Source: Orbicella franksi
Taxonomy: Eukaryota
Assembly: GCA_964199315.1 (NCBI GenBank)
Contig: OZ116703.1
Span: 806,001-870,000, forward strand
Reading direction: 5' to 3'
Length of the DNA: 64,000 nucleotides
Below the pieces are notes generated by a model. The model was not told the DNA's origin, did not search any database, and saw only the letters and a program-made list of their open reading frames with translations. This document shows, in pieces, positions 13,001-38,225 of the stretch (position 1 is its first letter; each line of letters begins with the position of its first letter). Made by a program: the position numbers and the translations under genes.

Positions 13001-15314
13001 GGACTGAAATACGGCGAAGGACTTACCCTTTGAGATTCAAGACTGGCATTACCATTATAGTAACCCGCACCATAGTCTTCTTTGAATTTTTGTTCGTTGT
13101 ATATGTCGTGACTTTCTTCTTCAATGTGGGACATGGCTTTGTCCTTAAACGATAAAAGCGAGACTCCAGAAGTAGCTTTGTTTAATCTCATATCAGATTG
13201 GATGGCGAGTTTTAGAGCTGCGTTAAATTTTGCATCAGAACCAAGTCCACTCTCGTTAGAATCAGATTCATCCTCTGGATGCACGAAACCTTCCAGGCCT
13301 GAGTTAGTGGTGTCGCTACTACCTCCAAATTTCTCCGACACTGTATTATAAATTTCCCCTTCTTTTAAGGCGGTTGTTGCCCCATACTTCTTCCAGCGTG
13401 GAGTTGGCCTTACAGCTAATCCAGGTTTACTGTGTATAAGTTCTGGATTGGCCAAGAAAGCATTTTCAAAATAGCTCGATTTATCTGGGGCTCCTAGCAG
13501 AAACATGTCATTAGCGTTAAATCGCGGTTCGTTTTCCATCTTGGTATTGTATCCAATTCCTTCATTTCTTTCCTTAACAATGGAAGCTTCTTGTTTTACA
13601 TCTTTCAGAGGGTATTCTCCAGTCGACGCGCTTCCCTCGCTGTGCTGACCACCAGACTCAGATTTTAAACTATTCTTCAATGTTTTCAGGCTTATCGATT
13701 TAGCTTGATTTCGGAGAGCATCTAAATCATTTATATCGTCCGATATTCCCACCAACTGTGGTCGTATGAGCGAATTCAGGAATCTGTAGCGAGAGCGAAG
13801 TTTAAGCTTTGCCCTTTGGAGTTCATGTTCTCCTTGAGTTGGAAGATAATAACGCAAGGTTCTCTGTGTATCTCCGACACTTCGATCCGGGTATTTCAGT
13901 AGTTCGGTTAATCTCGAGTCATGAGACCTCGAGGAGTTCTCCAGAAGCGATGCAGCATTCACAATCTTTGTTCCCTCCACTGAAGCTGCACCGTACTTGT
14001 CCATATTTGAGGTCTCTTTTCCAAATTCGCGATTTCCAAAACCCCTACCTTCCGCACCGGGTTTCGGTCCTTCTAGTACAAGTGCTGGTAACGATGCTTC
14101 TTCGTTCTTGTTTGAACCGTTTCTGTCACCAGGTTTGTCCTTCATTATTTCAGGATGAACAAAATACTTATCAAGGATGTGCATCCGAGTTTTCCTGGCA
14201 CCAGTCTCTTTGATCCCTTCCTTTACATTCTTCTTAGTTTCAATTCTCCCGGTCGAATCTTTTAATCTCACGTTCGCGGATCGCACCTGCGCTGATCCAT
14301 TGCGTACAAAATGGATTCTTTGTTTCGCTCGGTATTCATCTTCAAATGAATTGTCTCTTATCAAGATGTTTTGTGTCCCTGAAGTAAATCTACGATCGCT
14401 GGAATCAGATGCAACAATCTGGTCCGTTGAAAGATTGCCATTTGTTGCCAATGCAGTTCCTAAACAAGCAAAACAAAAGCACTCTCTAAAAGACAATATG
14501 GACACCGTTGTGCCACATAAATAGGTTTGTGCAGTACAAGAATGTTGAATGTTTTCGGCCAGTTGTAGAGTGAACAGAATGCACTCTGTAATTTAACGGA
14601 ATGAAGTTTTAGGTTCTTTCACCTCTAAAACTGAGTACGCTCTCTATGACAGCCAAAATGTGAATAAACAGTTTAACATTAGGTTTTTTCTCAAGCAACA
14701 CAAACTATAAATTATATGATGAGATTGCCAGCTTTCACGTGTGGTGCTTCCAAGCTGAGTGGTTTCGGCATAACCTTTTGTTTATTGTGAATATTGTTCG
14801 AATATTGGGGTTTGTCTTGATGTGAAGAGAAGGGGTTTCTTTTTCAACTGTTTTCACACTGTAAAAAAGCGTGTAAAAATCTTTAAATGGTTGCTTGGTA
14901 TTTGTCCAATGAAAATGGCAATAAAAACAAAGTGTTAAAATCTCATTTTCAAATAAAAAGAGAACGTAGTTCAGTAAAAGCGCACTCAGTATTTGTGTGC
15001 GAGTAAGTCCGTATTACAAACTTCCATTAACTATTTCTGTCACTACACCGACTCTTGGGTAAATATCGCATGCACGTGCGCAAAGTTTTTCTTTGTATTC
15101 CACTAGCTTTATGTGGTAAATTCAATCAAATACTGATCTGATTACGTATGAGATATCAAGAACTTGGAAACAAACTAGAGTGTACTGTTTTAAAAACCTC
15201 AAACGTTCAACAATCTTAATTAGAAGAGGCTTGAAATTTCTACTAACCTGCCAAAGCACTCAGCAACAGGCAAGTCATAAGAGTACTCCTTAGCAACCAG
15301 ACGTCGTGGGCCAT
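10054..15314 (-). CDS. Gene B: secreted ~924-aa protein: signal peptide + long disordered Ser/Gly/acidic stalk + C-type lectin domain + SGNH/GDSL hydrolase
   Basis: Exons 15248-15314 (MAHDVWLLRSTLMTCLLLSALA), 12768-14459, 11795-12178 (CPSGW...FCYLF...YIGL...WTWID...C...C...YICE, CTLD pattern), 11150-11356 (ILAFGDSLT, block I) and 10054-10478 (ILAGTND block III, GLH block V). All junctions are phase 1 and in frame. Confidence 0.8.
10760..11108. mobile_element. MITE-like element in a gene B intron
   Basis: Degenerate terminal inverted repeats CCCGTATAAAAAGAACGGGGCGGCTCG versus CGAGTGCTCCCGTCCTTTTTATATAG. Confidence 0.45.
11393..11706. mobile_element. MITE-like element with (GACTGCA/G)n subterminal heptamer repeats
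   Basis: GGGTAAAATACAGACTGCAGAC versus GTCTGCAGTCTGCATTTTACCC, plus an upstream GACTGCG array. Confidence 0.6.
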
Positions 15315-18051: not shown

Positions 18052-21000
18052 TTAACTTCTCTTGATGTCTTTGTGAGTTTTCTTGTGATGTTTCGAGTTG
18101 TGTAGACTCCGCTTCCACCTTTTGGCAAATGGCTTTTTCTGTAACCTGTTGATGCTATGCTCTGTTTTGAGATATTTCAAAATATCAGCTTGAATTTTAA
18201 ACAGCTTGTCCATCTTATCAAGCATTTTAGCCATAATAAATGCGTTGGCAGAATTTTCTGGTTTTGTGGGAACATCAGCCCTCTTTGCCACAGGGAACTG
18301 ATTTCCTGAGTCGAGCTTCTTGTTGGATGAGAGCGTTTTAAAAGACGTCAATTTGTGCAACTTGCTTTCCCTTGGGTCGTCATCAGTTTTGTTGATTTTC
18401 TCAGAATTTTTCGAATGATGTAAAACAGTTTTCTGGTCTAAACTCCACCGCGACCTTTCCTCCTCGTGTTGTCTTCCCAGCCTGCCTAGACGGTTTCGTA
18501 AGAAGTGACTCGTGTCAATGCGATTCCTTGAGCCTTTGAGCCAAATATTAATTTCGTTCCTTCTACGACGTCTGATGTCATTTTCAAGATCTTCGAGGTC
18601 GCGTTTTCTAATATCATCACCATCAGCAACGCCTTCATCAGCTTTGAGCTTGTGAATTCGTTTCTTTGCTCTCTGCATAGCAGAATACTTCGCTGCTTCG
18701 ATGATGGTCAAAATTTTCTCGATCTTCTTAATCTTGTCCACCTCGAGCTTTGCGACGCTTTCTTTTTTGATGTCATTTCTCAGCTTCTGTTCATCATCTT
18801 GGATTTTCTTTTTTGCTTGAGCATCGTCTGCAAATTGGTTCTTTTCAAGGCTTTCTTTCTCCTTGGTTATCTCGGCCTTTTCTTTGCTCATGTCGTCCTC
18901 ATATCGGTTGGCTTCCATTTTAGCTTGGTTTTCAATGTCATTGATAATGTGCTTCACCGAGTTTGGTGATAGACCAATCGCTTCCTCGATCTTGGACATG
19001 GCTAGACTCGCTCTTTCCGTGTCGTGCAGTTTTCTGTACGCTTCTGCAATCAGCGGATTAACTGAAACAAACAAACTGAATTAATACAGAGGTGGAAATT
19101 CTTGCACAGGAGTTTCAAATTCTCCTTCCATAACATGTCCAAATCAACCAAAAATATTTCTTTCGTATCAATCAAACCAACATATGAATTTACTTAATAT
19201 TTTCAGCAGGTTTCAAAAATACAGAGGCTGTGCTTTTGCTCATTGTACAATACGACCGTAAGCAAATCTCGTATTTACCCGGGGCTTGATACGGTGCAGC
19301 CGGAGGATAATACATTGGAGGGCTCCAAGAATACTGTGGACTGCCGGATGAGATCGCCTGACTGTTCCATGGGTAAAACGAGTTCGTGGGGTACGCGCTT
19401 GAAAGCGCCTGTTCCCCGGAATACGCCGCTGGAGGTTGTAAGTTTGCAGGACTTGGAGGAGCTGAAACCTGGGGCTGGTCCTGCAATAACATAATTTGAG
19501 AGTAATGTTATTTTCACCATATCAGGCTAAAGTTTTCGAAACAAAGCGCAAACTATATGCAGCTGATTACTTGGAGGAAGAGTTACTGAGTTTTTTTTTG
19601 GTTGATTCTGAAAAGGTAACCCGCGATCAGAATATTGTACAACGTAAGTAAGCGCGGGGTTAGTCTGGCAGAAGCGGATCGCGTCGTGCTCGTAGTTTGA
19701 AAGCGCTGTATCATAAATATGCAAAACTAGAGCTGAAACAAATATTCGACGATACAGTACCAGGATTAATATTTCTATCTGCAATTGAAAACTGAGACAA
19801 CTTCAACACGGACAACATCCACAGAGTGTGTGCAACTGAAAAACTATACAACAAACAGGCGCGAACTACACCTCAAATTTCCTAAGAACAACTAAGGATA
19901 TTTTATAAAAACAAAGTTACAATCCCCCCTTTTAATCTTTCATCTTTTGACAAAACAGATGGCATGTACCCGCTGATACTTACATTAAAAGCAGAATAAG
20001 GTGAAACCTCCGGCTTCTCAGATGCAGGGCTCTTGGGAGCAGGTTTCTTTGGCTCTGGGTGAGGGGCAAAGTTTTGCTGGGGAGCTTGAAGTTTTGGCGG
20101 TTCATAATATGGTTGCTGTGGCAACAAGTTGGGAGAATTGGACGGTGAATCAAAGTATCTTGACATAGATGCTAAATTTGGTGCCGCGACCGCGGGGTTG
20201 TACGATGCGGTCAGCGGTGCCGACTGTGGCATTAAACCATTTGATTGGCCAACAGCGGATTCGATCGTGTGTACCGGAAGTGATACTGTTTGAGCAGGTG
20301 CGACTGGTTGGGCGGGGGCGACTGGCTGATCAGGCATGACTAGTTGAACCGGCGCTACAGGTTGAACAGGCGTGACTGGTTGAGCAGGAGCGAATGGTTG
20401 AGCTGGAGCAACTGGTTGAACCGGTGCAACTGGCTGAGCAGGAGAGACCGGTTGAGCGGGTGCCACCGGTTGAGCAGGATGCTTTGTGGTAAGACCGGTG
20501 TCTTTGCTAGGCGGCTGTGGTTTAATGTGCGCCTGTTGTGCTTTTGCTTCATTACTGCTCGAGCCGTGCGCATCGGACTGAACCTTGCCAGCACTGACTT
20601 GTGAAACTGTCGGTTTCTTTGTCGGTGGAGTGTTTTCCATATCACTGAACTCCATATCTCCTGGGCTAATATCGGTGTTATCTTCCTCTGGCGAGTAGCT
20701 TGCCACCTTGGCAGCCTCAGGTTGTACGGACTCCACGCTGTGCTGGGCACTGCTCTGGGGTGGAAAGGCTGACACGCCGGTCTGAGGTGCATTGACTGAA
20801 GGAAACGAGATACTAACGTCATTCTTTTTGAAACATTGTAAAAAATGGCTAGTTTGCTGACAACACGTCAATTAAATTTACGGTTAGGGTTCTTCATTGA
20901 AGCAACAACCGTACATATGATTTTTTCGCTTGTATGCACACGGCAATAACGGTTTTCCCCGGTTCCAAAAACATATTTAGAATTTGTGCCTTAAAATAAG

Positions 21001-23534
21001 ATTCATATACTCTTCTCATTTCAGAACAGCTTTGTTTGTTTGTCCGCCAGTCATTTTAGGAATTTTCATTTTGTCCTCCAGAAAGTCTCAGTGAATAAGA
21101 GGAAATAACATCACACACTCACTTGAGTTTATTGGCTGTAGCTCCGTATTACCCTGGTAACTGGGCTGATAAGGAGGCGTCGCGCTAGTTGGACCAGCTA
21201 AACTAGCAGGTGATAACATACTAGGTGCAGAACCCACACTGGGGGGACTCATCCCTTGGAACATTTGCGGTGGATAACTAGCCGTATATGCCGGCATCAT
21301 GGGCTGATAAGCCGGTTGCGACATTCCCCCAAAATATCCAGGTGCTTGAGGAGGGTATGTAAATGGTTGTCCAAGAACCATTTGCGGCGTTGAAGCAATT
21401 TTGTTCTTTTGAGCCGCATCGAGTTCCTCCTGAGCTCGTTCCTTCGCTAGATACTTAGCGGCTTCCAGTTTGACGATCAATTTTAAAATACTCTGGGCCT
21501 CATTGACGTCTTCATCTGCAACTTTTTCGAGTTTGACGAATTTCTGCTTCTTGTCTTTGTCGTCCGTTTGATCGGCAAGTTGTTTGAAGTTTTTCTCCTC
21601 GTCTTTGAGTTGCTTCTCTAGTTTCTCGGTTTTGTGCTCGACCGTGGAGGGATTTAATCCAAGCTGGTTTTCTATGTTACTCAGTGCTTTGGCCGCTTTG
21701 ATTGCTCGTTGTAGCTTCTCGCGGGCGATAACCACAGGGTCATCTGAAGGAGCAAAAACAACATAATATATCAGCTAAATATCTGTCTCTTTTGCTTCGG
21801 TTCAACATTTATTTTGGAGCATTATTTCTATATTTCAGTAACATTAAGGTAGCACTATTACTTTGACATGGTTTAGCAAATACGTTGCAAAGACGTGGAA
21901 TGAGAGCTCTACCCTGCCACCGGTGACATCGTTCCAATGAACGAAGTGGTCAGTGGTTTGAATTTTTGCAAGAAAACTGTCATGTAAAACTAACTTAAGT
22001 GTCTAACATGCTTTAATAGCCCATTTCCGAGTTTCCTTAAGCCTCTCTATCAAAGCGAGGCCTGCTGCACGACCATTCATACGAAAATTAGTTTCATTTG
22101 CCTGTGAATGAAATCTCGTTTTCATTTAAAAGGTGGACTCGCTTTGAGAAAGAGGTTAAAAGAAAATCGGAAATGGCCTGTTCACGACCAAACTCTCACA
22201 AGAAGTACCATAAGAAATGTAAAGGATGCAGTAAAGAGACGTTGTATGTTGAAATCAGGATAATACCTTGAAGAGGGAGCTGCCGCTTTTCGCGTGCGTC
22301 GCTTTTAAATTTCGTTGCAGAGGATGTCTTATGTGCATGCTCATTGTCTGCAAAAAAGACAGCAAGAAGTTTCTTTTAGCCACGCAGTATTTGTACGTTG
22401 AGCTTACGTACCTATTCATCATTTTCTATACGTAATGGGACTCCATGTCTAACAAGTAAGAAAGTAGTAGCTAAAGCGTTAGATGTTGGATGTTAGTAAT
22501 TAGGGTTAATTATTAGCTATTATTAGGGTTAATTATTAGCTATTATCAGGGTTAGGGTACGTGTTCCGCGCTGTTCCGCCTTGCATAATTACATTATGGA
22601 CATTTCCATCTTAAATGTGCACCTATGTCACTATAACGCTGTGTTAAATCGTGAAAACATCTTAAATCTTCATCCTCATTTCAAAAAAACAGTAACTCCC
22701 TCTTCTAAGCCATCTTAACGTGAACACACTGATATGGTGGAGCATTCCTCTTGTTGGAGGACATTCTGTACATAATTACACATTTCATACTGTATCTGCT
22801 AAAATAAATTCCTTCCTGTAACCTTGATGTTTTATTTGCCCTTTTTTGGCTTTTTGTTCTGTTTCGCTGGAATCAGCGTCTTCATTGACTTCATCCTCAT
22901 CATCATCATCCTCATCTTCCCTGGGGAACTCTTCCACGGTGGGAATGCCGTATTCCTCTAGTATTGGGTAATCAATCAAATATTCCCCTAGTAGTGGGCT
23001 GTACTGCTCGAGGTTTGCTTCATCTTCATAAAGCTCTGTGACAATTCATATACAAAAGAATATTATATTAAGTAGGCCACAAGGACAATGCAAATTTTTA
23101 GAAACTTTTGTTGGCTTTGTTCCTGTCACCTGAAATATTCCTATTTAAGACTCGTTGCGTATTTGATCGGTAGTTTAAATCACAGTTGTTTCAAAAGTTG
23201 TTAAAACAACCCCGAACACAGATATTTAAGAAATAAGTAAGTATTCTTTGAAGTGCAACAGAAGCCATATTTTATTAACTCTCTCAACGATGTCGGAGGT
23301 CGCTTTACAGAGTTTAATAAGCTGAATAATTGCAATTAAAGATTCTACAAACACAAATGGTTCTTCGCTTCCGCCAGTTAGAATTTTCAAGCGTCCACCT
23401 AGAATCTCTTACTTAACCTAGGTTTTTGGTCTAGTGATGTTGATTGTGTTTCTAGACCTACCCTGAGCAGAGCTATGTCCCAGCAGAACAAAAGCGGAGG
23501 CTAATAAGACCAGCTTCAATGAAACAGAAGCCAT
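18052..23534 (-). CDS. Gene C: orphan secreted ~976-aa multi-block protein (acidic block, two coiled-coil modules, P/Q/Y-rich and PAQPV-repeat region, basic tail)
   Basis: Exons 23462-23534 (MASVSLKLVLLASAFVLLGHSSAQ), 22823-23035, 21123-21743, 19984-20795, 19279-19480 and 18052-19061 give 2931 nt in one frame and match long ORFs in the track. The donor at 22822 (GTTACA) is weak. Confidence 0.78.
20283..20478 (-). repeat. Coding 18-bp minisatellite (~11 units) encoding P[AV]QPV[AST] hexapeptides
   Basis: Translation PAQPVAPAQPVSPAQPVAPVQPVAPAQPFAPAQPVTPVQPVAPVQLVMPDQPVAPAQPVAPAQ within gene C. Confidence 0.9.
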
Positions 23535-26500
23535 AAGATATCTGTTGACAAAATGAAGAGGGCAATTAGTATATTCATTCTTGATTTGCAAGCTGGAAAC
23601 AGCTGCTGATTCAGGGTTAAGGTTAAAGTAAAAACAACGCCACTCCCCTCCACTATGAGATATTCAAAATGCAGGAAAGGCTTTTTTACAAGACCCCTCA
23701 GGTAGTGACACACCTTTGGAGCTCGCGCTTACAACCCCTCCCACCCCTCCCTCTCTCCATAAAATAAGGAATCCGCCCCTACTTTCTCTATGAAAAATTC
23801 CTTTCGTGTTTTCGCCACAGGCATTAAGCTCATTATGCAAAGCCCGCTATGTTAACCGTCTGTGAAGAGTTTCTTCACCAAGCCATCCATAGCATTTTCC
23901 GCTCAGTGAATCGAACAATTTTGGTGATTCGCTTGATCAACCAGAAAGCTTTGCGTGTTTATCTTCTTTTAGACCGTAAATTAACAAACTGCTTGTGGAA
24001 TTCAAATAGCGGAACACTACTTGTAAAAACTTCAGATACGTTTGATTACATGCTCTTAGCTCATGTACTATGGTCACGGAAATGAATGAAGAACAAATTT
24101 CAGCTTCGTTCACAAATCGGAACAATATTACAGCCAAATTACTTTACGTCTTGCGGGAAAACTATCTTGAAAACAAGTTAAATTTCTTCTTGTTTTCGAA
24201 CAGTTAAAACTCGTATCTTATTGGTACATGTTTTTAAACTTAAAGCATAAGGGCGTGTCAAATCACTGGAACCAGAAAAACCGCGATCCTCATTGATTTT
24301 AAAATGACACTAGCACAATAACGAGGTCATGAAATAAAACAATCACAAACGTAATTGCATCTGATACGATAAAAGGCCTAAAATTCTTCGGTGAAGAGGA
24401 GATGTCATCCGAACGAGAAACCTAACCCACTGTCCAAAAGTACGTTTTGTGTTGGATCTCGTTTAGGCTATTTGAGGGTCTTACGAAATGAGATTACTGA
24501 CAAACGAAAAATGTCCTAATTGACAGCTGATAAATGGACCAAGATTTTAACTGACGAAAATTAACTCGTGCATACTGAAAACCGACAGAAGAAAAAGTTA
24601 AATATTACACGGCGACAAGATGATTGACATTAGTATTGCTCTACCTGAAGTTTTTTTTCTGCAAAATTAACCCCAATTAATTTGCGGAGCATATCGCGGG
24701 AACAATATGGTAATTGGTAAATCCCTTAGTCTGTTTTGAGGCTCCATTAGTAAATGGCTGACCTAAACAACACCTGTTTGAATTTCAGAGAAGTGTCGTC
24801 GGATAGTTCATTGCCTTGACAAGTCCATGCACTTAGCAATTTCAAAACAAAAGATCTTTCTGTAACCTACCGTTCCCAGTCCAAACAAGTTTAGCTAATT
24901 TCTGTTTCGTCAATAGAACAAACGTTCTGCAGACTTCAGAACCATAACTTTCCTTCACATGTTGGAAATTCTCTAAGTCTGTCACAATCAGACATTTAAG
25001 GGTGGATAGATTATCACTAATTCTTTTGTCAGAGAATAATTTCTACTGAAACCAATTATGAAACGATCCAAAAATTGTCTTATCCAAAATCAAAGTTGAG
25101 AGGAAATTGATCAAACGGACGGCCAATTGTTTTCAGTATATTGCTCTGTCAGGGACTACTTTGAAAACCTTTCATTGAATATGCTGGCAATGAATTACCA
25201 AGGACAGCAAGCTCCAGATAAAACATCGCAGAGTTATTAAATGGAAGTGCGAAATCGAATGCTCGACCAAGCGCACAATTTATTTCACTACAGTTTTGGA
25301 AGCGAAACCCTCCGGACTGCAGAGGCTTTTGATAAACTAGTTGGCAGAAAGTTGATGTCTGGGCTTAACAATGTGCCAGTTGTTCCGCAGCAACTAAAAT
25401 TGAGGAGCAGCACTTAAAAATACTTTATGCCTCTAAACTACGAGCATTATCAATCGAAAATCACGACGTATGGGTGAGCAACCATGATTTTGGGAACACC
25501 TCAACACTAAGACTCAATGAAGTGAAATAATCACTTACCCGTAGAAACCTCAACCGTATGTCATGTTACGACACCAACAAGTGTAAAAATACACGTTTGA
25601 ATCTCAAACCCCAAGAAAACAACCTTTGCTGCGAAGCAAAAACACGATCCCAAACGACTAGGACATTTCTCGATTCTTCGTGCTCGGGTTTTGCCTAAGG
25701 ATTCTCCATTTTGTTTCCACCTTTTGGTGTAAAAAGATGAACTCAGAATGCTATATGGGTTGAGATCATCATTCAAATTAACCAATCACAAGACGTGAGT
25801 TAAAAGAGCACTGTTTTGCTTGTTGATCCGCGGGAATTAGACCAGTCAACCAGAGGAAAACATCACACCTGTTGTTTGGATTGGAAATCATCAACAAAAA
25901 TTAAGTTTGTTTTGAGAACGTTTTCAAGCGCGTTAAACCATCATTTTAAAGAGAGTGAAACGGTCCGCGCGTTTCGACTATAGCGCAGGGCCGCAAGACA
26001 TTTATTTTAGAGCTGAATTCTCAACTCGGCACATACAAATGATTGAGGTAAATTGTAATTGAATGTTTGTTTTTTCATCCCCGATGTCAACACTTTTTGG
26101 TCTTTCCACACACACTTTTTTGACTACTAATTTGTTTGCGAGAATATCTTTTTGAAGAGGGAGGCGAGGGGCCATGGCCTACAGGTTAGCGCGCTCAATT
26201 AGGATCAAGTGGTGTAAGTTGGAGCCTTGATGGGCTCATAGCGTTGTACCAGCCAGGTGTATAGATAGGCACCGGCGAACTTAATGCTGGCTGATATCCT
26301 TGCGATGGACTAGCGTCCGATCTCGGGGAGAGTGGAAATACACCTAATCTCTTTATGCATGCTGCACGAATTCAGTGTAAGAACTAACTAAGCGCTTCAG
26401 TGACAACCGTACACCTCGAGCAGGACGATCTCCTGTCGCCATACAAGACACCACTGAAGCTATTTCAACCCTCGGAATCGTGAAAAATTATGTTTTGTAG

Positions 26501-28052
26501 TGTTGTTGCGATATGTTATAGATATAACGGTGGTTCAGCATTGTTCACTTTGACATAAATGAATCTTCCTTCTTCTACGCAAATATAATATGAACTTCCA
26601 ACTTCTAAGCTAAATTATAACATACCTCAACGTCTATCGGTGCCTGACAAACAGACAGATGTGATGTAGCGGGAAATTAACACAAGGCGGGAGTATACTT
26701 TTTTTCCGGTGGCTGATGTAACAAGTGCGCAATTGAAGTTATAAATTTAGAGCGGTTGGTGCAAAATTGATCTTCTACCTGTTAATCAGAATCGAAAACT
26801 TCGTAGAGTCAAGTCCTGCGCCACTTGCTTTTGGCAAGCGGTTTGTCACGGTAATTAGGTTGAAAAAAGCAACAACAACAGCGTTAATTTTGAGTCGAGT
26901 GGTTCTAAGTCCCGTTGTTATTGGGTTTCGGGTTACTTCTTTCGTTCACACTGTACTTTCCTCATAAGAGCCGCTATGTCAATAAGTGTTTCCATTTACA
27001 TGTAATGCGGACTGTCTTTTTAGCTTACTTTGAAATAATTCTTAACGTAGGTTTGTGTTGTTAATCGGTCAAATCAGACTAACTTAATAATCTTAAGGTG
27101 GAGGTTGAAGTCTCCCAAGCACTAAACGAATGAAGTGGCAATAAAGTCACAGTATTGATGCCGGATCAATTCTTTCAAGGAATAATTAGAAGAGAACAGA
27201 CATTCGATATACCCGGCCGGAATTTTCCAGTGTATTTCCTTTTCTGTTAAAAGTAAAATAGAGAATGGTGTCATCTGTCTGTATTCTTCTCTGACTCATT
27301 ACAAAATACCCGTCGACGGTAAAGAGAAAAGGAGTAAAGTGGGAAAGCAATAATGGAGGAGAAACACTGTTTCCCGGCTATGAAGTATTTGCCTTACAGG
27401 GACACACTTGTGCGTGGAAAGCACCTACACTGATCGACAATGGCAAAGCAGGTTGTGCAATCAGAAGAGATCACGGTTTTCGTGAAAGTGGCATCCAGTC
27501 CTTGGATTCTTATTCTAGCTCTTTTTATTCGGCGAGGAACTGGACTTTCAAAGTGGTTGCCAAGCAATATGTCCCGGCCCTAAACGCAGATAAGCTGCGC
27601 AGAAGGTGCGAAAAAGTCCTACGGGCTCGTATTTAGCCTAGTTTCTCGATCTTAGCTAATCTTTATTTATCTTTCTCGGTTATCAATTATTAACACAAAA
27701 ATAATAATAATAATCAGTAATAATAATACTTTGTTTATGTAGCACTGATTTCGTTTCTTAGCCGGCCTGCATGACCCTATTTCTCCCCCTTTTAATTCTA
27801 CTTTTTTATTAGAGGTAGGCATGTTAAACTGAAGCTACTCATCAAATAAGAATTAAATTCTATTACACACCTACTTGTAGAATTAATAAAAGTTTGTCCA
27901 TAATTTAGTTAAAGGAATTTTGAACGAAATCGTCTACAAAACACATCGTATTTTCCTTCTTTTACAAGAAACCAAGCATCTTCCGTTGTGGATACAATGC
28001 TCCAGTTTTCAAAAGTCAAAAAAAAAATTGGCTAATAGCTTATTACATTTAT

Positions 28053-29840
28053 CTATTGTCCTTGTTTTACAGGCAATAGCCCTATCTTTGTTTTAATTCT
28101 TTCGCTGTTAAGTTGGCGTTTGTTGTTGTTCTTGTCTCTGTTGTTGTATTTGCTGAGTTCCTTTTGCTGTTTTTCCACCATCCTTTTGTTTCCGAATCTG
28201 ACTTTCCTCACTTTCAAAACCAAGTTATCCAAGTTTGTTGTCATTCTGTTTCCATTCTTCAATTCCCCTATCATGTTACGTTTGTATGGTATGACAGGTT
28301 TGATGGCGTCCTCGTTGATTGTATTCAGCGGTATCTTAGGTCCCCTGGGTTGCGTTGTCAGCTGGGATGTGGGTTTCCCGCCAGGAATCAGACCGGAGAT
28401 CGCTTTTATTGCGTTCTCTCCAGCTTTTTTGAAAAATTCTATGATGTCTCTTGACTTTCGTTGTTGCGCTGAGGCTAGAAGAATAAAAAAATCATGAAAT
28501 AAGCTGCTAAAATAAGGGAATCAGAGCCCCCTCAAATTTTTGCAAATTTAGAGTGGTTCCAGACAGCTTCAGTATACGTCTTCAAGTTACGAAAAACTAT
28601 TTACCAATGTTTACCGCAATTTGGCAGTGAAAATGGGGACATCAACTTGTTTTCATTAATTGTCCATTAGTTTGAGGTTATATTGTAGAACTGACGATCA
28701 AAGAATATCATTATGAATCCATCAAAGTGCGAGATCATAGTGAAAAGTACTGAGGACTGTTATCAGTCATTCTATCGACATGAATAGGCGGCCATCATAC
28801 ACGATTACGATAAACCATTTTACAGTTGTGTGCTCAGTTACCTGGCCTATGAATGCAAGCGAGGCTGGAGGTAGCGCTGCTTTGATACAAATCTCTATGC
28901 TTTTCTTGTTAGCATTAGAACAATTTAATTTACACAACAAAAGCAGTGAGGTCTGTATCAAAACAAGGTCACCGCCAGCCTCACTGCCATTCAAAGGTCA
29001 AGTTACTGAGCAGACAACTGTAAATTAACAAAGTGACATCAGTTTTTAATGCGTCTGTCCTGTTATTGATCATGAATTTCGTCATAACATTGTCAAAGTA
29101 GTCTGCGGATCCACTCGGCTATCCACAACTACTTTGACAATGTTATGACGAAATTCATTGTCAATAACAGGACAGACGCATGAAAAACCGACGTCAATTT
29201 TTTTTTTACAATGACAAATGTTTCAAATTGTCCGCTCTCGCTCTTTGACGCATCGCATAAATAATAACTTCATGTGTCTGTCTGCATATTGACAATGAAA
29301 ATTAGCCAATGAGCGCGCAAGAATTTCTGCAGTTATCGTAAAATGGTTTATTGTAATTGTGTGTGAATCCTTCCTGGTCAAGAACTCCTACATAAGGACT
29401 ATATGCATGGCCAGACACCGCGTGACATGCGTATATCGACCCAATCAGGATCAAGCTTAAAGAACTAATTAGAAAACCGCGCCCTGCAACCTTTGATGAA
29501 TTAGCAGTTTACGAGTGTCACGTGTGAAAAACAAAATCACTCTATTGATTGTTTTGCAAGAAATAACAATGACTTCAAAGAGTCAAATTAGGAGATGAAA
29601 TTATTTTACGCTCAGCTTCATTGTCTTCTTGTCATGGCGAGCAGGTGTTACGGGTAACAACGACAAATGAACTGCCAAAGCTTCCAGGGCTCCCTTGTCA
29701 AAATATTATGAGTTCCAAAACAATTTGATGCGGTGTTTACCACGGCCCAAGCTACTAGACATAGCAAACAAAGAAAGAACAATTCTACCTTGAATATGTA
29801 GTTCCACTGACAGACCCATTAAGAGCAGAATCAGAAACAT
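28053..29840 (-). CDS. Gene F: orphan secreted ~157-aa basic precursor
   Basis: Exon 29789-29840 (MFLILLLMGLSVELHIQ, donor GTAGAA) splices in phase 1 to 28053-28474 (acceptor TTATTCTTCTAG; SAQQRKSRDIIEFFKKAG...KQGQ*). Confidence 0.62.
28819..29345. mobile_element. Two adjacent foldback/MITE-like elements in the gene F intron
   Basis: TTTACAGTTGTGTGCTCAG / CTGAGCAGACAACTGTAAA (28819-29024), then a long hairpin GCGTCTGTCCTGTTATTGA...TCAATAACAGGACAGACGC (~29050-29180). Confidence 0.6.
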
Positions 29841-31264
29841 AGCTGGCCACAAGAGGGAGAGGCTAGTAACAGGTCCAGCATGTGTTGTTCACTGTTGCAA
29901 GAATCGAAACACTTTGACTCATTGCGAGCAAATCTCTGCGCCTCCTTCAATTTCTTCAAAGGCCAAGCTAAGATTATCTCTTCTCAAAATAAACCATCTG
30001 GTAAAGTTCTTGAGTGTCGAGTGCAGTAAACATGTAAGGAAATAAGCTGCTTATTTACCTATTCACATGTAATGTGACGTCGACAGGTATAAATATTTGA
30101 CTACTGGCAAGTCACAACAGTTGTTTGCTAAGTTTAGCCAATTTAATTTTTTTTATTTAGTCCCTAAAGGGTACATAACATTGCGAGAGTTTTATAAGTT
30201 AAATTAGACATTAAATTCGAAAACTGTAATGTGACGTTAGAGAAACGAAGACTTAGAGCGGAGTGCAGATGACTTCTGGAGGTTTAAACAAACAAAATTC
30301 GAGATGAAGACCTTTTTAACCTGTCATTCGCCAACAAGAAAATGATACATGTCATGATCCCATATTGCACCGCTTGGCTGTCACTGAGACGTGCAGGATA
30401 TGAAGAGGCTAGCTACGATAGTAATCACTTCCTTGTTTTGTGTTAATGTCTGTCACAGGTTAGCAGCTGTAAGTAGGTTTTTGCTCTGATCTATTACGCA
30501 TATCTGGGTTATGGGTGTTCCACAATAATGGGAACAGAAGATCGTCAGATAGGGACTAATCTTCTGGTGTCCGGAATTGATCTATCTCAAACTCCCAACT
30601 TCCAAAATTTTTAAATCCATTTTAACCTCAGAAGAATCCCGAAAAACAGAGAGAAACTTTTAATTTTGCGATAAAATAGCTTTTATTACATAATCAGCTG
30701 CACGTTACTAATTATGGCTCATGCTTCTGTGGCGGATTACATAACTTTTTGCATGTTTTGATAGGGTTATAGTTTCTCGAAGAGTTAAAAAATAGATACT
30801 TACAATAAGCGATGATATAATTCATTGCATTGCAACTGAAGACTAGCTCGCCCGCAAAGGCTTGCAAGCATGCTGGCATATTAAATATAGAATGTAGATG
30901 AATACTCTTTGTGAAGTAAAATGTCCATACGTTACTATACTGGGTGTAGTGGGTCTGTAATCTTAGATTGCGCAGGCGCCTCCCGTCTGTCAGTTCTAGT
31001 CAGCCATTTAGCGAAAAATTTCAACGACAGTTGTAGTTGCAGTGACTCAAGATGAAAATTTTCACGCCAAAAAAACCCGCGTTTTCTGCGTTTGACGCTA
31101 GGTCCCGGCTGTCCTTCTCTGACAACAGGACCATGTCATTGCGTCTTGAATCAGCCCGAGCTATTGTTCGCCACTTTGGATCAACTCAAATCGGTTCGGC
31201 TGGCCAGACCTGACAAATGGTATGCGCCTTCTATTGCAAGTTTGAAGAATACTGTCAATTAAAG

Positions 31265-33944
31265 CTAAAACAGTTTGTTCAAAAACTGCTCCACTGCTCC
31301 TTCGGTGTGCTCTGAAGTCATCTTCTCAACATCACTTGGTTTAATCCCGAATTTCGCTCCAATAGCTTTGGCAAGAGACGCTGCCTTCTTCAGGGAAGAG
31401 TTGACCTCGTCAAACACCTGTCGAAGCCTGTTCTGAGTTTCACAATGAGCGAGTAGTGCTTGGGCCACTTTGAACTTTAATGTGTTAGTTTTCTGGATCT
31501 TTTCCTTTAAAATGTCAATCTTGCTCGCCTCAGGACTTTGCTGTTTGACCTGAGAACCTTTCTCTTGTTTTACCTCAGGCTTCTGAGGAGCATGCGCTGT
31601 TCTGACCACGTGATGTTCTGTGACCGCTAGAGCTTTCAAGATTTCTTTGGGTTTATCGTGTGCGACTGTTGAACTGTTTTGATTGATCACCTTCTTCGTT
31701 ACGTTAGGAGACATTGCTTTCAGTTGGAGTGACTCTGTATGTACTTGAGGTTTTTCTTTGGTTATCTTGATTTCATGTGTGGGCAGATCTTTATTTTCAG
31801 CTGTTTGAAGCTTTGCTGTTTTTATGGTTTCCACACTAGCGGGGCTTTTCAAGTGACTGGCGTTAACTTGCACACCTTGCGCTGGCTTATCTTTCGTATT
31901 TAAAGCTTTTTCTTTTGAGGCCTTAGTCAGCGCTGCTTGTTCAGCAGCTGCTGGTTTCAAACTAACTTTCTTTTCTGCTTCTTTTTTTGACAAGTCTTGA
32001 ACAGGAGATTTTGGGTTCTCAATAGCCTTTTTCGGAGAAGTAACGTCTTTAATATGAGGCGCGTCTTTCGACGTTTCCGCACTCTTTCCAGCATCGTTCT
32101 TCTTGATCTTATCTTCCACTTTAACAATATCTTTACTCTTTATCTTCTTTGGTAGATTCTTATGCGTGTCTTTCTGAGGTGTTGCATGCTGTTCTATTGC
32201 TGTCTTGTGACTTTGCCCCTTCTTGAAGTGAGCAGTCTCAATCTGCGTCTGTTTCGCATCATTCTTTGCTGCTTTCTGGCTCTTTAAGGAACTGTGCGGC
32301 GCTGATGGCTTTTGAGATTTCTCTGTAGTTTTATCTTTTACTATTTTCTCTGTTGCTTTATCCTTCCCTGTCATCTTTGTCGTTTCATCTTTGACCATTT
32401 TTTCTGCTTCTTTGTCTTTAACTACTTCATGCGACGAAACAGTTTGCTTGGAATTCTTTTGATGTGATTTAGCTTGTTTCTGCAACAGTCTAATTTTCTT
32501 TGGATGTGTGGAAGTTTTGGTTTTTTTGGGTGCAAGGTCCTTTAACACTTTTACAATCTTCTCATCTTTATGCGTCTTCACCTTCTCTTTAGCAATCTCT
32601 TTCTCAGCCTGTTTTCTTCGAATGTTGTCCATGACTTTCCAGTATTTGTCCAAACCTTTAAGATGGAAGTATTTACGCAAAACACTTTGAGGCATCTTCG
32701 AAAGTATTTCGAGAACACGCTTGTGCTTCTTTGTCAACTTTCTGCGAACCCCATGTTTCGCGTTCGAAGAACGCGGAAGATCTTTCCCTCCTGCTTCTTG
32801 TGGCTTGGCGATGTCAGATTTCTTGCTGCCTGTCTCGATGGTTGCCTGCTCGCTTCCAGCCATGAATTCCACAAGCGCTCTGTATGCTTTCTCGGGGACG
32901 CCAGTTTGTTCTTTGTGATCCTTTGCTCTGGCGTCACTTCCAATCAAGGCTTTGACCAGGTTTTCTTTACTTATCTCATCACTGTTTGCTTTACGCTTTG
33001 GTTTTTTATCCTGTTGCTTGGAAATTCGTTTAGCTTTCCAAGCTTTTGTCTTGTCTTGTACCTTTTTCTTTGTATTTCGTTTCTTGACATGTTTGTCTGC
33101 CTGTAACCCATGTTTCTTTGACAAATGATGTGACTCTTTACCCACCCGTACGTCTTTTCTCTTGATCTCAGGAGAATCCTTCTTTTTCTTGTGATTATCT
33201 TCATGTTTACCGGCATTTCTTCGGACGATTAATCGACCTATATCCGATACCAAGTTCGTATCCGTTCGCACATCTTCGTCGTCCTCATCGTCAGATCTTC
33301 GGGACCGGTGATGCGCTTGTTCGTCTTCCGTCACCGAAATTCCGCTCTCTTGAATCAGCCATTGGTTGATCTCGTTAGCGAGTATTTTCGATTCCCTTTC
33401 GGCTTGCTCTATAAGTTGTTCAAGTCTTCGCGTTGCATCAAGACTGCCTAGAAAATAAAAAATGCGTTGTTAAACACCTTTCAATGATTTGAAATATCAC
33501 CTGATTTTGGCTTATGTGACGTCTAGCACAGTATGGTGTTTGGGTCCCTCCTAAATTTCAAATACCAGCGTAATACTCAATTGGATGCTTTCTTTCCTCC
33601 ATCGCATTTACATCACGTGCACGTCACATGTTAACATCACGAGAGAAAGATTGTGAAAAGCACGGGAAAACAGCGCGCGAGCCTGGTGACGATTGGATTA
33701 ATTTTTTCCTTGGTCGATTCAAAATAAAGACAACAGGTTTGATTTGTAGACTGAACATGAAGCACGAGTTTGTAGATTGCGTTTATAGATTATCGATCCC
33801 GACAAACGCAAACCTAAAAACTATTTTCGATAGTGAACGTTAAAACAGTCTAAACTATTCATGCTTACCTTCAGTCAGTTGTAGAGCGGCTCCGACAAAC
33901 AAGACTAAGGTCAAGTGGAAAACTGAATTGTAGCTTGGCGTCAT
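31265..33944 (-). CDS. Gene D: orphan secreted ~752-aa lysine-rich protein with helical C-terminus
   Basis: Exon 33869-33944 (MTPSYNSVFHLTLVLFVGAALQLTE, donor GTAAGC) splices in phase 1 to exon 31265-33447, which contains the 689-aa ORF. RSRR furin-type site near the N-terminus. Confidence 0.82.
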
Positions 33945-36900
33945 GATCTTGCATGCTGCGATAACAAACAAACCAGAAAAGATAAACATGGCACTGATCG
34001 ATGGTTACTGTGGTCAGTAATAAATTCACCGCATGTTTACTCGCTATTCACCGCGTGTTATTTTGGGTTAGTAATTACCCCAGTTCTCAATTACGAGTCC
34101 TGCTTTAACTTGTGTGAGCTACAACGTAGATTGATCGATCACAAGTCCATAAAAACTATCCGATTTTTCGCCGATGTCATTACTTTCTATATGTGTGTAT
34201 ACTTTCACCGAAAGGTGACCTGCGATCAGGCGTTCTTTTGCTTTTTTTTCGGGGGAATAAAAGAACGCCTGCTCGCAAGCGGTAGTTACACCCCGTTGAA
34301 CTCTTCTGCGCAAGGTGAAATGTGAGGAAAGATGGGGAGGCTGGAGTTCCTATTCTCTTACTTGGCATCGTTACCCTTGCCGGTTAATGTCCTCTCTTAA
34401 CGTCATGAGCAATCCATTACCCAGTCCAAAGGGAACAAAATTGGCCACACCCACCATATTTAAAAATTTCAATATATACAAAATTGGCCGCACCCACCAT
34501 ATTTAAATATTTCAATGTATCAATTCTCTCTATGAATAAAAAAACTTATTAGACTGGAAATGTATAAGAAACTAACGCACCGATGTAGCAACATTTGATT
34601 TCTATCTATCAAGATGATAGATTGAATAAATATTATGAACACTGTTTACACTGGATAACGAAACTACTGTAACGGATTGTATCCAAATTTTGCTGGGTTT
34701 TTTAAGTATATAATATTTTGTTTTGGTTAGCTGCCACGATCGATAGCCAGTGCTGAAAATGTTAATCGATGTGCTTGAATGAAACGAAGAGAATATAATA
34801 ACTTCAATTCATAAGTAAATATTTAGTCATTAGGTTTTGTTAAGTGGGCGGTCAAGTATCCGCGCGGGGCGGAAAACACCCGTCGTAAGAGGTTTAACAC
34901 AGCTAAGTATTATTCTCAAAATACCTTTTGTAACAAGAAATCCAAACCATACCCATGCCCGCGCAACTAAATTAATGCCGTTCTCTGGTTAAACAAAAAC
35001 TCATGTTTTAGACTAGTTTAAGAATCGTAAATTACACAACCGAGGAACCGCGGGAGGCTCTCGATTTTAGACAACAAAAACTTCAACCAGCAAACTTTCA
35101 TAGTCACAGTCATCATAAATTTTCGTTAACACTAACTCTACATGGCAAGACACTTTGCGCAATGTGGTCCGGTGCGAGAAGTCCCATTTGAAAAAATTTC
35201 AAGCCTTGTACAACTGCTACATAAGCTTACCTCCGAGACCAGCCCTTCACTCTTTGTGCTATCACCTTTCGTACACGCACTTATGGAATAGACTTTTTCT
35301 TTCACATACCGGCAGAAATCGCAACCCCGGAACGACCCACTCTTCTACGAACAAAAGCCTTTCGATTTTTAGAGGGACTGCTGCAGTTATTGACGGAATT
35401 GTACACCAAATTTCAGGTGGAAAATCTCCTTGTTCTGCAAGATACAGTCAGGGTACCTGTTAAACGCGTGTTTAACTATTCATGTAGTCAGTGTGACATG
35501 TTTAGTGACCCGGGCTGTGTTTGTGTGTTCACTTGCCGATTGTGGATGTGATGTGTGTGTTCCATTGTTTGGTTGTGTCAAGGCCGGTCAAGGGCCCCAT
35601 TTATAGAAAACAAATGCATGCAGTTCAGCGATGATTAAGCACATTGAATGGACAAAACCTAAATTTCAATCAGGTTTTTTTTCACAATCAGGGTACTAAT
35701 AGAACGGACAGCTTTTCATAACTCGCTTGCTAACTCAGCGCATCACGTTCTTTGCAAACTAAACCCCTTATTTATTATGATTGTTATGTTGTGTTAGTGA
35801 CCGACCAGTTCCTCCCAGTTTCCTTTTTTTTTTATTTAGCTTTATCACTAATGTTCTGTGGATATAGGAAGTATAACCATCGTTTTAGACAGACAACGCC
35901 GTTAATGCTCTCGGTGTCTTTTTACGACTACTCAAATGGTTTTCCCTCACAAATCGAACTGGTGGAATAATTTGCAATATTTTCCAAGCAAACTCAGTGA
36001 ATTGTATCTGTTCAACACTTTTGTTAGTAAAGTTATCTTATGAAAACACTTGAATTTTAAGGAGAGTTTAATTTTAGTCAAAAGAAAATTTGCCTAATTT
36101 TATTTCCGTAATTTCCGTCATTGCTCGTGGTGTGAGTAGCCGAAGAGTAACAAGCGGGAAATCTGGTCGCGTTAAACTGGGGTTGAGTCGTAAGGGTTTT
36201 TCTTAGGTGTCCGCCGTACGAGGGTGGTTGCTTATTACTTTCAAATATATTTAGCTGAGTACAAACCAAAGCATTCTCAACTCAAATTAAATTAAACTTG
36301 ATATTACGAGTGCTAATAATGGGATTGGAGACATTGCAAATGTAACTTGTTATAATGGGTTATTTTTACAAATTCACCTTCATGGGAGGGGGGGAGGAAT
36401 TTTTTCAACAGGAGCTGCCCACTGTAACGTTAAACGTTGAACGTGACGCTAAGACGCATGCAATTTAAGTGAATACTGATTACCATTTCCACATTCGCTT
36501 TCAGATGAGGAGAGTTACTCTCGGAGCCCCTTCCTAGTTAACTATTGAAGCTAGTAGTCGTAGTAATGGGGTCAGTGACAGTAAAAAGTAACATTCCTAA
36601 ACACAAGATATCTATTTCTCTCCACAGGTCTCTGCTCCAGTAAACCGTCTTTAAAACCGAGAGTAGGTTAACTGAATAAGATATATAGTTTAGCCCGAAA
36701 TGTTACGGAGTTGTCTGCTTCTATGTTTCTCCACCCACTTTGAATGATTATTGTGGGGAAAAGGAAGTCAACTGACATATCAGCCTGTGCCGGAAGATTA
36801 ACAATAACCATGCAATCATGTTTAATATAACTTTCAACGTCATGTTATAACAGTCCACATTAACGTAATGTAAAAATAGATTTTGAAGCGTTTCATTGAC

Positions 36901-36968
36901 GATTGTCTCCTAGTAATCTTCTCCTGACTTAGTTTTTTTCTCTTGCAATTGGGGAAAACTTCGCCAAT

Positions 36969-38225
36969 TTACTTCTTAAAATGTACGTAATCGAGCCCCA
37001 TGTGTTCACCAGCATGTACCAAGGCGACTTCTGCTTTCCGTATAACATCTTTGACGTTATTACTACCAGTTCGTGCTTTCTTTCTCAGCTTGGCAACCTT
37101 ATCAGCCAGCGCGACATATTGCTTAGCAATTTTCAGCTTCTTTCGCGCCTTGTTCAATTTCCACTTTATTTCTTCCACTTTCGTTTTAAATTTCGGGACT
37201 TTCTCTAGCAACACGGCGGATGTCGACTCTATCTCTTTCCCAGGTTCCGCACCAGAGGCCTCGGCCTGTTGAAGCTCTGTGAGAAGTGAGCGATTGCTGT
37301 CACGTGGTTCGGGCTTTTTCTCTGAAAAGTTAAAAAGTAAATCAGAGATGGCTTAGCTAAATTACTTTCTTTCAAAATTTATTTAGGTCATTTTGCATGG
37401 CAAGGAAAATGTTCAAGCCACATGCTAGTCGATGCAAGCTGGTGAGAGGAGGCCATGCAGGAGCCAATGGCTGTTGCAAATTCTTGCAGTCCCTCGCGGA
37501 CTTCCGATCTAAATGTCCGCGTTGAAGGTTTTCAGGTAAATCTGTTGCGTCATGCTACTTAGCAACACTACTACTGAACACTGCGGGCTCGCATCAAATT
37601 CTGACAAGATTCTTTCCGAAATAAGAACTTAGCGTTTTCCTGGGGAATACAAACTCAGTTTTATGATAGCTATAGCTCCCTCTCGATCACTTTCCCACAT
37701 GGAGTTGTTAATCTTAAATTTGGACAGGGAGACTAACATTTGTCGCAAACGGGTCTGATTCAATGTCAATCCTTCTTTTTAAGAAAGCAAGTTGAGATTG
37801 AAGAAAAGTCGACAACGACAGGTGTTACATTGAAGCGGCCGTCGACAACCAGTTCTGCTGGATTCAGTCATTAAACCAAGACAGAACGTTCGGGTTATAA
37901 TATCGCCTTTGTTTGTCGTGGAAAAAAGTTCTGGGAAAACTTAAGTAAATTTCAAATCGATGTTTAGAAAAATCCCTCACTAGATCGCACTTTTCTCCAC
38001 TTGATCTATCACTTGAGAGTCATAAACACAGTAGACATTATATAGGTTACTAACAAAAGCCGAAATGTGTTCAGTCATTGGATAACAAAAGGAAACTAAA
38101 GCAACAAATCAACGGGTCGTAACATGAAAGCGCGCTCTGGTTTCACTCCTACCTTCCTTCTTTGCGGGTAATGCCGCTATCACTACTCCGAGGAAAATTA
38201 GAACTACTAGGCTGTCCAACCTCAT
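36969..38225 (-). CDS. Gene E: orphan secreted ~141-aa precursor (signal, acidic pro-region, very cationic helix)
   Basis: Exon 38153-38225 (MRLDSLVVLIFLGVVIAALPAKKE, donor GTAGGA) splices in phase 1 to 36969-37321 (acceptor TTAACTTTTCAG). Confidence 0.72.

Follow-up and report, generated by a model that had tools for sequence, protein, structure and literature searches.

The closest relatives of the protein treated here are two database entries whose names are misleading. Nematostella vectensis XP_032236747.2 / A7S907 and Hydractinia symbiolongicarpus XP_057317476.1 are long, secreted-type proteins that carry two copies of a helical module with low-complexity sequence between them, and they bear the automatic names 'proteoglycan 4' and 'microtubule-associated protein futsch-like', respectively. 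Both names reflect only a proline- or lysine-rich composition; the proteins have neither lubricin nor Futsch domains (their Pfam searches were empty), searches of the literature by accession and automatic name returned nothing relevant on them, and neither has been characterised. Two more general systems serve for comparison: classical coiled-coil assembly domains, and the generic helix C-cap/N-cap junction, in which a Gly C-cap (Schellman-type), a hydrophobic staple, Pro and an S/T/D-x-x-E capping box occur together, as in alpha-alpha corners and helix-turn-helix motifs. Here we analysed a stretch of 64,000 nucleotides (nt) from the coral Orbicella franksi (GCA_964199315.1, contig OZ116703.1, positions 806,001 to 870,000; hereafter the window), in which three neighbouring genes for secreted proteins, C, D and E, lie on the minus strand. 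An earlier note, made from the letters alone, had proposed that an unnamed helical, perhaps coiled-coil, module (K-A-x-x-A-L...G-hydrophobic-x-P) occurs twice in C and once each in D and E, that it makes the three genes paralogues, and that it could mediate their assembly.

Probably, one real domain family, that of gene C, had been merged with two look-alikes in D and E, and a family uniting C, D and E is unsupported. Of the proposed three-gene assembly domain, the evidence leaves one gene with an internal duplication. What stands is a helical domain, undescribed and without a Pfam family, by which a family of large secreted proteins, spread across Cnidaria and expressed in corals, is defined. 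Gene C is a true relative of the Nematostella and Hydractinia proteins and was modelled from RNA joints, the assembled coding sequence being open for 1,003 codons. Its features are:

18052..23534, minus strand: gene C, a secreted protein of 1,003 amino acids (aa)
23534-23462, minus strand: exon 1, signal peptide
23035-22823, minus strand: exon 2, acidic
22347-22267, minus strand: exon 3, a mini-exon of 81 nt
21743-21123, minus strand: exon 4, opened by module 1
21397..21729, minus strand: module copy 1 (aa ~127-237), with helix1-turn-helix2 junction KAAKALSNIENQLGLNPSTVEH and closing motif LEAAKYLAKERA
19279..21396, minus strand: P/Q/A-rich low-complexity spacer of ~430 aa between the modules, translated from RNA-supported exons
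20795-19983, minus strand: exon 5
20285-20478, minus strand: 18-nt tandem repeat in the spacer (PAQPVA-type), located by a tandem repeat finder
19479-19279, minus strand: exon 6
19061-18052, minus strand: exon 7, opened by module 2, with the stop codon at 18054-18052
18631..19050, minus strand: module copy 2 (aa ~672-811), with junction RASLAMSKIEEAIGLSPNSVKH and closing motif IEAAKYSAMQRA

The introns between the seven coding exons are all of phase 1, all six GT..AG joints were read in RNA contigs and raw poly-A reads, and exons 4-7 are covered by a single RNA contig of 3,425 nt. The encoded protein consists, in order, of the signal peptide, an acidic stretch, the mini-exon, module 1, the spacer, module 2 and a conserved basic tail. 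All four peptides quoted by the earlier note lie, letter for letter, on the minus strand where it had placed them, those of C at 21634-21717 (repeat 1) and 18949-19032 (repeat 2). It had also observed that each C copy starts right after a phase-1 acceptor with a D/N-P motif, and the RNA bears this out: in one and the same transcript, both modules begin exactly at confirmed phase-1 acceptors, at 21743 ('..DDPVV') and at 19061 ('..VNPLI'). The downstream EAAKY that it saw in both copies is likewise present, at 21451-21465 and 18685-18699.

The two copies are clearly homologous. Module 1 and module 2 align by BLASTP at E 5e-9 (31% identity over 131 columns), and the profiles of their orthologues align by hhalign with a probability of 96% (E 3e-9, 104 columns). 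The cross-match recurs in other corals, exon to exon and across species, at E 1e-7. Copy 1 is 64-99% conserved in coral orthologues, and the exons orthologous to copy 2, taken from five further coral assemblies, show 67-91% identity. When a profile of the motif region was run against the whole genome (497 Mb), C1 (E 1.3e-18) and C2 (E 4.9e-18) were the only matches at E<=10 (with only three first-look candidates scored), and neither single-sequence nor profile searches found extra copies of the C module in this genome. Both copies give a significant profile match across the whole module of ~110 columns.

The C module comprises about 110-140 residues and three predicted helices: a short helix 1, a G-hydrophobic-x-P turn, a long charged helix 2 and a long helix 3 that ends in [IL]E[AV]AK[YF]xAxx[RK]A. 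In the AlphaFold2 (AF2) model of copy 2, the helices span residues 2-24, 29-72 and 77-139 (mean predicted local distance difference test score (pLDDT) 81, predicted template modelling score (pTM) 0.30), and the string first noticed by eye runs from where helix 1 ends, through the G-L-x-P turn, to the helix 2 N-cap. The motif therefore opens the domain in C and is followed by 85-110 helical residues that end in EAAK[YF]xAxxRA. The family signature can be written as [KR]-A-[AS]-x-A-[LV]-[ST]-x-[IL]-E-x-x-hydrophobic-G-hydrophobic-[DNS]-P together with the distal [IL]E[AV]AK[YF]xAxx[RK]A. When heptad registers were contrasted with those of 2,000 composition shuffles, a simple test that does not replace a dedicated coiled-coil predictor, the C helices showed no heptad a/d periodicity (p 0.13-0.87), and hydrophobic residues make up only 17-25% of the core positions. 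The term 'coiled coil' therefore seems not apt for C, which, unlike classical coiled coils, looks nearer to a charged helical domain or to single-helix segments.

That the module is helical and unnamed agrees with the database searches. No Pfam-A family reached its gathering threshold in the proteins of the window or in their Nematostella, Hydractinia, Oculina and Actinia orthologues (best matches at E 0.03-0.8 and 10-15 bits, against cut-offs of 21-40 bits). In PDB, sequence and profile searches gave only chance matches to helical proteins of no relation, HA2, flagellin and zipper-fused constructs among them, the profile matches all being at E>=0.005. Foldseek found nothing at E<=0.001 for the C and D models among the AlphaFold database clusters and PDB, a search that is little informative for models which are extended helices with a pTM of 0.30-0.39, and a feature search of the ESM Atlas gave no usable match for C2, E or the C-terminus of D.

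An exhaustive search of 1.84 billion protein representatives with the C profile returned 34 sequences at E<=1e-3, and the members of the family scored between E 1e-42 and 1e-4 in hmmsearch. The family, which is unnamed and defined by our alignments A3/A5 together with these 34 library matches, is cnidarian-wide and undescribed, and occurs in corals, sea anemones and hydroids. Two modules each are present in Nematostella XP_032236747 and in P0128, the cluster representative of Hydractinia XP_057317476. A maximum-likelihood tree grouped module 1 of corals, of Nematostella and of P0128 in a single clade (95/92 support), with the module-2 copies outside it. Because this clade spans three lineages and both Nematostella and Hydractinia have two copies, the duplication predates the split between anthozoans and hydrozoans. 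Of the exon duplication that the earlier note had read from the shared boundaries, the duplication itself at phase-1 exon boundaries holds; a recent date for it does not, since both copies are already found in Nematostella and Hydractinia.

The case of gene D is different. Its splice sites and phases were read from the sequence, and its features are:

31265..33944, minus strand: gene D, a secreted lysine-rich protein of 752 aa
33944-33869, minus strand: exon 1, signal peptide, with a phase-1 donor
33447-31265, minus strand: exon 2
31268..31525, minus strand: conserved C-terminal domain of ~86 aa, containing the segment SLKKAASLAKAIGAKFGIKPSDVEK (31322-31396) that was likened to C

This model agrees with the full-length RefSeq orthologues of Oculina and Stylophora, and 69 orthologue clusters extend from stony corals to sea anemones. 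The last ~86 residues have a mean column identity of 80% among 26 orthologues (stony corals to Actinia and Actinostola); outside this domain the protein is lysine-rich and poorly conserved. The domain is single-copy, with no further copies in the genome by single-sequence or profile searches. Its AF2 model contains a helix of 61 residues (12-72), a G-I-K-P turn and two short helices (77-86 and 89-99). The likeness of D to C (KAASLAKAIGAKFGIKPSDVEKMTSE vs KAAKALSNIENQLGLNPSTVEHKTEK) is confined to 26-27 columns at the helix-turn-helix junction, where BLASTP gave E 0.043 and hhalign P 0.012 with a probability of 3.5%; with a C profile of 39 rows that included anemone and hydrozoan members, the values were P 0.008 and 4.8%. 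Column shuffles equalled the score in 2/100 and 3/200 trials. Under the HMMER profile of C, the D open reading frame (ORF) scored 5.0 bits (E 2.2 among 1,630 window ORFs), and random ORFs reached 4.3 and 4.2 bits. Hhalign found no alignment between C2 and D at the motif. The motif of D follows the 61-residue helix and lies 25 residues before the C-terminus with no EAAKY-type helix after it, and the candidate as a whole (31268-31567) shows no significant match across the module and lacks the closing [IL]E[AV]AK[YF]xAxx[RK]A helix.

These results leave some room, though little, for the idea that D, though not E, is related to the C module in diverged form at the helix1-turn-helix2 junction, perhaps as a shuffled or partly retained fragment. 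We regard this as unlikely. The alignment of C and D always falls on the same columns, whatever profiles are used, its score stands about 3.5 standard deviations above the shuffles (z about 3.5), and D lies beside C with only one uncharacterised gene, X28, between them in the coral as well as in Nematostella. Nevertheless, the HH probability stays below 5%, HMMER is at background level, the match stops short of the strongly conserved flanking helices of either family, and, with several genes having been compared by eye, the nominal P of 0.01 has to be discounted for multiple looks.

For gene E, whose splice sites were also read from the sequence, the features are:

36969..38225, minus strand: gene E, a secreted protein of 141 aa
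38225-38153, minus strand: exon 1, signal peptide, with a phase-1 donor
37321-36969, minus strand: exon 2
36990-37046, minus strand: the segment VIRKAEVALVHAGEHMGLD of the earlier note, exactly as quoted there

Gene E has 26 orthologue clusters, including Nematostella LOC5511498, and its C-terminus is almost invariant (AKQYVALA...VLVHAGExMGLDYVH). The motif itself was never aligned with C by any of the programs; the best alignments of C and E lie elsewhere, with P 0.08-0.2 and an HH probability <1%, and shuffles did as well in 29/100 and 32/300 trials. The motif of E stands six residues from the end of the protein (the protein ends six residues after G-L-D). The E candidate (36972-37196) gives no significant match to the C family and, like that of D, is without the closing helix, and its heptad periodicity is borderline (p 0.05-0.07 in the register contrast against composition shuffles). 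By single-sequence and profile searches, gene E is single-copy in the genome, and the weak E-like matches found are other lysine-rich helical ORFs. Five weak matches to E, nearly identical to each other, lie on contig C10 (G000:C10:28,637,962-28,943,526, loci L007-L011 and L013) in an open frame of 368 aa with one TAA; they are placed at 28684704, 28749407, 28814158, 28878907 and 28943230, and this spacing of ~64.7 kb points to a large array of ~65-kb units in tandem on that contig.

On the earlier note's own account, the two modules of C and those of D and E would go back to a single ancestral helical module, would by now be so diverged as to be hardly recognisable, and would mediate the assembly of the three proteins. 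It is true that each of the three genes encodes a secreted protein, starts with a signal-peptide exon of phase 1 and belongs to a conserved block, and that the junction likeness of C and D has a P of about 0.01. Phase-1 signal-peptide exons are, however, generic to secreted proteins. Patterns drawn from the four segments also match only these segments in a 75 kb-equivalent of window ORFs, but the test is circular, and such post-hoc regular expressions, being derived from the same four segments, were rejected as evidence. Several results stand against common descent. The motif of E was not recovered against C, C2 and D do not align at the motif, and neither D nor E has the hallmark EAAK[YF]xAxxRA helix of the C family. 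Within its domain, the motif is placed differently in C, D and E; in the latter two it is found far into the last exon, and there is no nearby intron to mark it. The exhaustive search with the C profile drew no D-like or E-like protein, of the 32 C-module proteins that it newly retrieved none had a D or E domain, even with the threshold at E<=10, and full-length profile comparisons added no support for either as a member of the C family. We consider descent of all four segments from one module very unlikely.

The comparison of profiles with shuffled controls, which the earlier note had itself named in advance as the result that could overturn its proposal, was not significant for D and E, and these are not demonstrable members of the C family. 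The claim of a module common to C (twice), D and E survives for the two C copies, is marginal for D (HH probability 3.5-4.8%) and is unsupported for E, and the paralogy of the three genes through this module finds no support in the profile-profile, HMMER, whole-genome or exhaustive-library results.

Some observations weigh against our separation of C from D and E. The match at the C-D junction has a P of about 0.01, which becomes slightly better with a more diverse C profile, and it was reached by only 2-3 shuffles per 100-300; D was the top non-C ORF of the window in HMMER. The three genes are neighbours, and the order D-X28-C is conserved to Nematostella, where the genes D (460 aa), X28 (240 aa), C (1,343 aa), a gene of 532 aa and a gene with a C-type lectin and a GDSL domain follow each other as in the window. 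The Nematostella relative of C is thus flanked as in the coral, with D and X28 upstream (on OW051990.1) and the C-type lectin + GDSL/SGNH gene downstream, and this block of D, X28, C and lectin/SGNH, a microsynteny kept since the coral-anemone split, raises the prior for ancient tandem paralogy without proving it. Furthermore, the pTM values of the AF2 models (0.30-0.39) are low, the account of convergence given below draws on general structural knowledge, and the function suggested for gene C is taken solely from composition and architecture.

The comparison of D with E gave a less one-sided picture. In default hhalign runs, D 15-60 aligned with E 5-49 over 45 columns (P 0.025-0.03, probability 1.6-2%), collinear with the motif of the earlier note. 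With relaxed gap penalties, a setting chosen post hoc, the alignment grew to 60 collinear columns that included the motif (score 24.2, nominal E 5e-4, probability 32%). This score was reached by 0/300 column shuffles (mean 11.7, sd 3.0) and not by the reversed profile (14.3), and block shuffles that kept the heptad phase reached it in 0/150 (7-column), 0/150 (11-column) and 4/150 (15-column) trials. In HMMER, D and E matched with 7.6 bits (E 0.84 among 3,253 ORFs) against a background of 7.1-10.0 bits, and D was not among the top matches of the E profile. A distant paralogy between the C-terminal domains of D and E, with E amounting to a short form of the D C-terminus and both of them unrelated to the C module, is possible, though doubtful. 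In its favour are a collinear alignment of ~60 residues (LK[FW]K..A ... [KR]KA..a....G...G-hydrophobic), the shuffles and the default P, together with the adjacency of the genes in corals and the C-terminal position of the domain in two secreted proteins. Yet the gap settings were picked after the data had been seen, the default HH probability is very low, HMMER remains at background level, no bridging paralogues were found in this genome, and in Nematostella gene E is not adjacent to D but ~47 kb away from it on the same chromosome.

A wider version, in which the D C-terminal domain and E are ancient paralogues and form, with the C module, one cnidarian superfamily of secreted helix-junction-helix domains whose products assemble extracellularly, appears highly improbable to us. 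If it were true, the gene block, kept together since before corals and sea anemones separated, would encode an extracellular assembly system restricted to this lineage.

The reading of C as a family of its own, with D and E as look-alikes, can be reconciled with the common string through the needs of helical proteins. The junction letters (Ala-rich faces, a C-cap Gly, a hydrophobic staple, and Pro with a Ser/Thr/Asp-x-x-Glu N-cap) are those that would stop a helix and restart it, and because they would serve helix termination and restart, unrelated helical proteins could converge on the same string, with D and E each owning a separately conserved C-terminal helical domain. The letters in common (an Ala-rich helix end, hydrophobic-Gly-hydrophobic, Pro, Ser/Thr/Asp, a hydrophobic residue and Glu) fall exactly on the predicted helix break in both the C and the D model. 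The generic C-cap/N-cap junction is a structural motif, not a family, and its likeness to C and D, which comes from structural knowledge, is to be taken as a lead. A pattern of 20-25 residues of Ala, Gly and Pro at a helix junction, spotted by eye, is thus insufficient for inferring paralogy.

As to function, the product of gene C might be a structural or matrix-type protein outside the cell, with a folded helical domain of high charge at either end of a flexible proline-rich spacer. The coiled-coil part of the earlier proposal, which seems not to fit C, finds a better candidate in D, because the 61-residue helix of its C-terminal domain has significant heptad periodicity (p 0.005 in the register contrast against 2,000 composition shuffles), a property that it has in common with classical coiled-coil assembly domains. 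Judged from this periodicity, D may oligomerise through the helix. For annotators, the signature and alignments provide a domain definition for a family that now carries misleading automatic names ('proteoglycan 4', 'futsch-like'), and those who work experimentally with Nematostella or Hydractinia gain a small set of conserved, lineage-specific extracellular genes.

The remaining genes of the conserved block are the following:

28056-28520, minus strand: X28, uncharacterised, between D and C; the ORF begins ...ILLASAQQRKSRDIIEFFKKAGENAIKAISGLIPGGK
10054-15314 of the window: C-type lectin gene downstream of gene C, syntenic in other corals (L019:19404-19958, L020:13353-13835) and in Nematostella (L023:22651-25547)

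X28 has no Pfam match; its Nematostella counterpart (L023:5913-7323) is 45% identical and occupies the same place between the orthologues of D and C. The linkage of C to the lectin gene was also seen on other coral contigs, and the Nematostella lectin gene downstream of C carries a GDSL/SGNH lipase in addition.

Several minor observations concern gene C. Its mini-exon (22267-22347, minus strand, 81 nt, phase 1-1) encodes 27 aa with a KR site and was joined on both sides in two RNA runs. It is missing from the spliced transcript of another coral (P0014), and one RNA contig continues from it into the upstream intron (22267-22690). Cassette splicing or intron retention is the probable explanation. 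Within intron 3 (22013-22064), a stretch of ~41 nt at 22023-22063 had an RNA depth far above that of the neighbouring gene C bins (~193 vs 26 in RNA run X1, 69 vs ~10 in run X2). The loose RNA ends that flank it run into many different sequences, and the 41 letters there were skipped as repeats; the stretch looks like a short repeated element common to many other transcripts. The basic tail of ~190 aa after module 2 (18055-18630) is conserved as strongly as the module itself (~70% between corals) and can be aligned into Nematostella to about aa 855. With an RRRRR run and several KR/KK sites (RRRRRNEINIWLKGSRNRIDTSHFLRN; NAFIMAKMLDKMDKLFKIQADILKYLK), it may undergo convertase processing or represent a second uncharacterised domain.

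Gene D, too, has many RxRR and KR sites at which the protein may be processed. It also has a conserved helix at the N-terminus (window 33350-33447; RLEQLIEQAERESKILANEINQWLIQESG in this coral), and in the orthologue of Actinia tenebrosa (P0089) this helix is present twice, at residues ~30-60 and ~90-120 (KLEHIIGDLKGESDKVANEIYAWIDKH and VEKLIKTIKGESDHLANEIYAWINKH).

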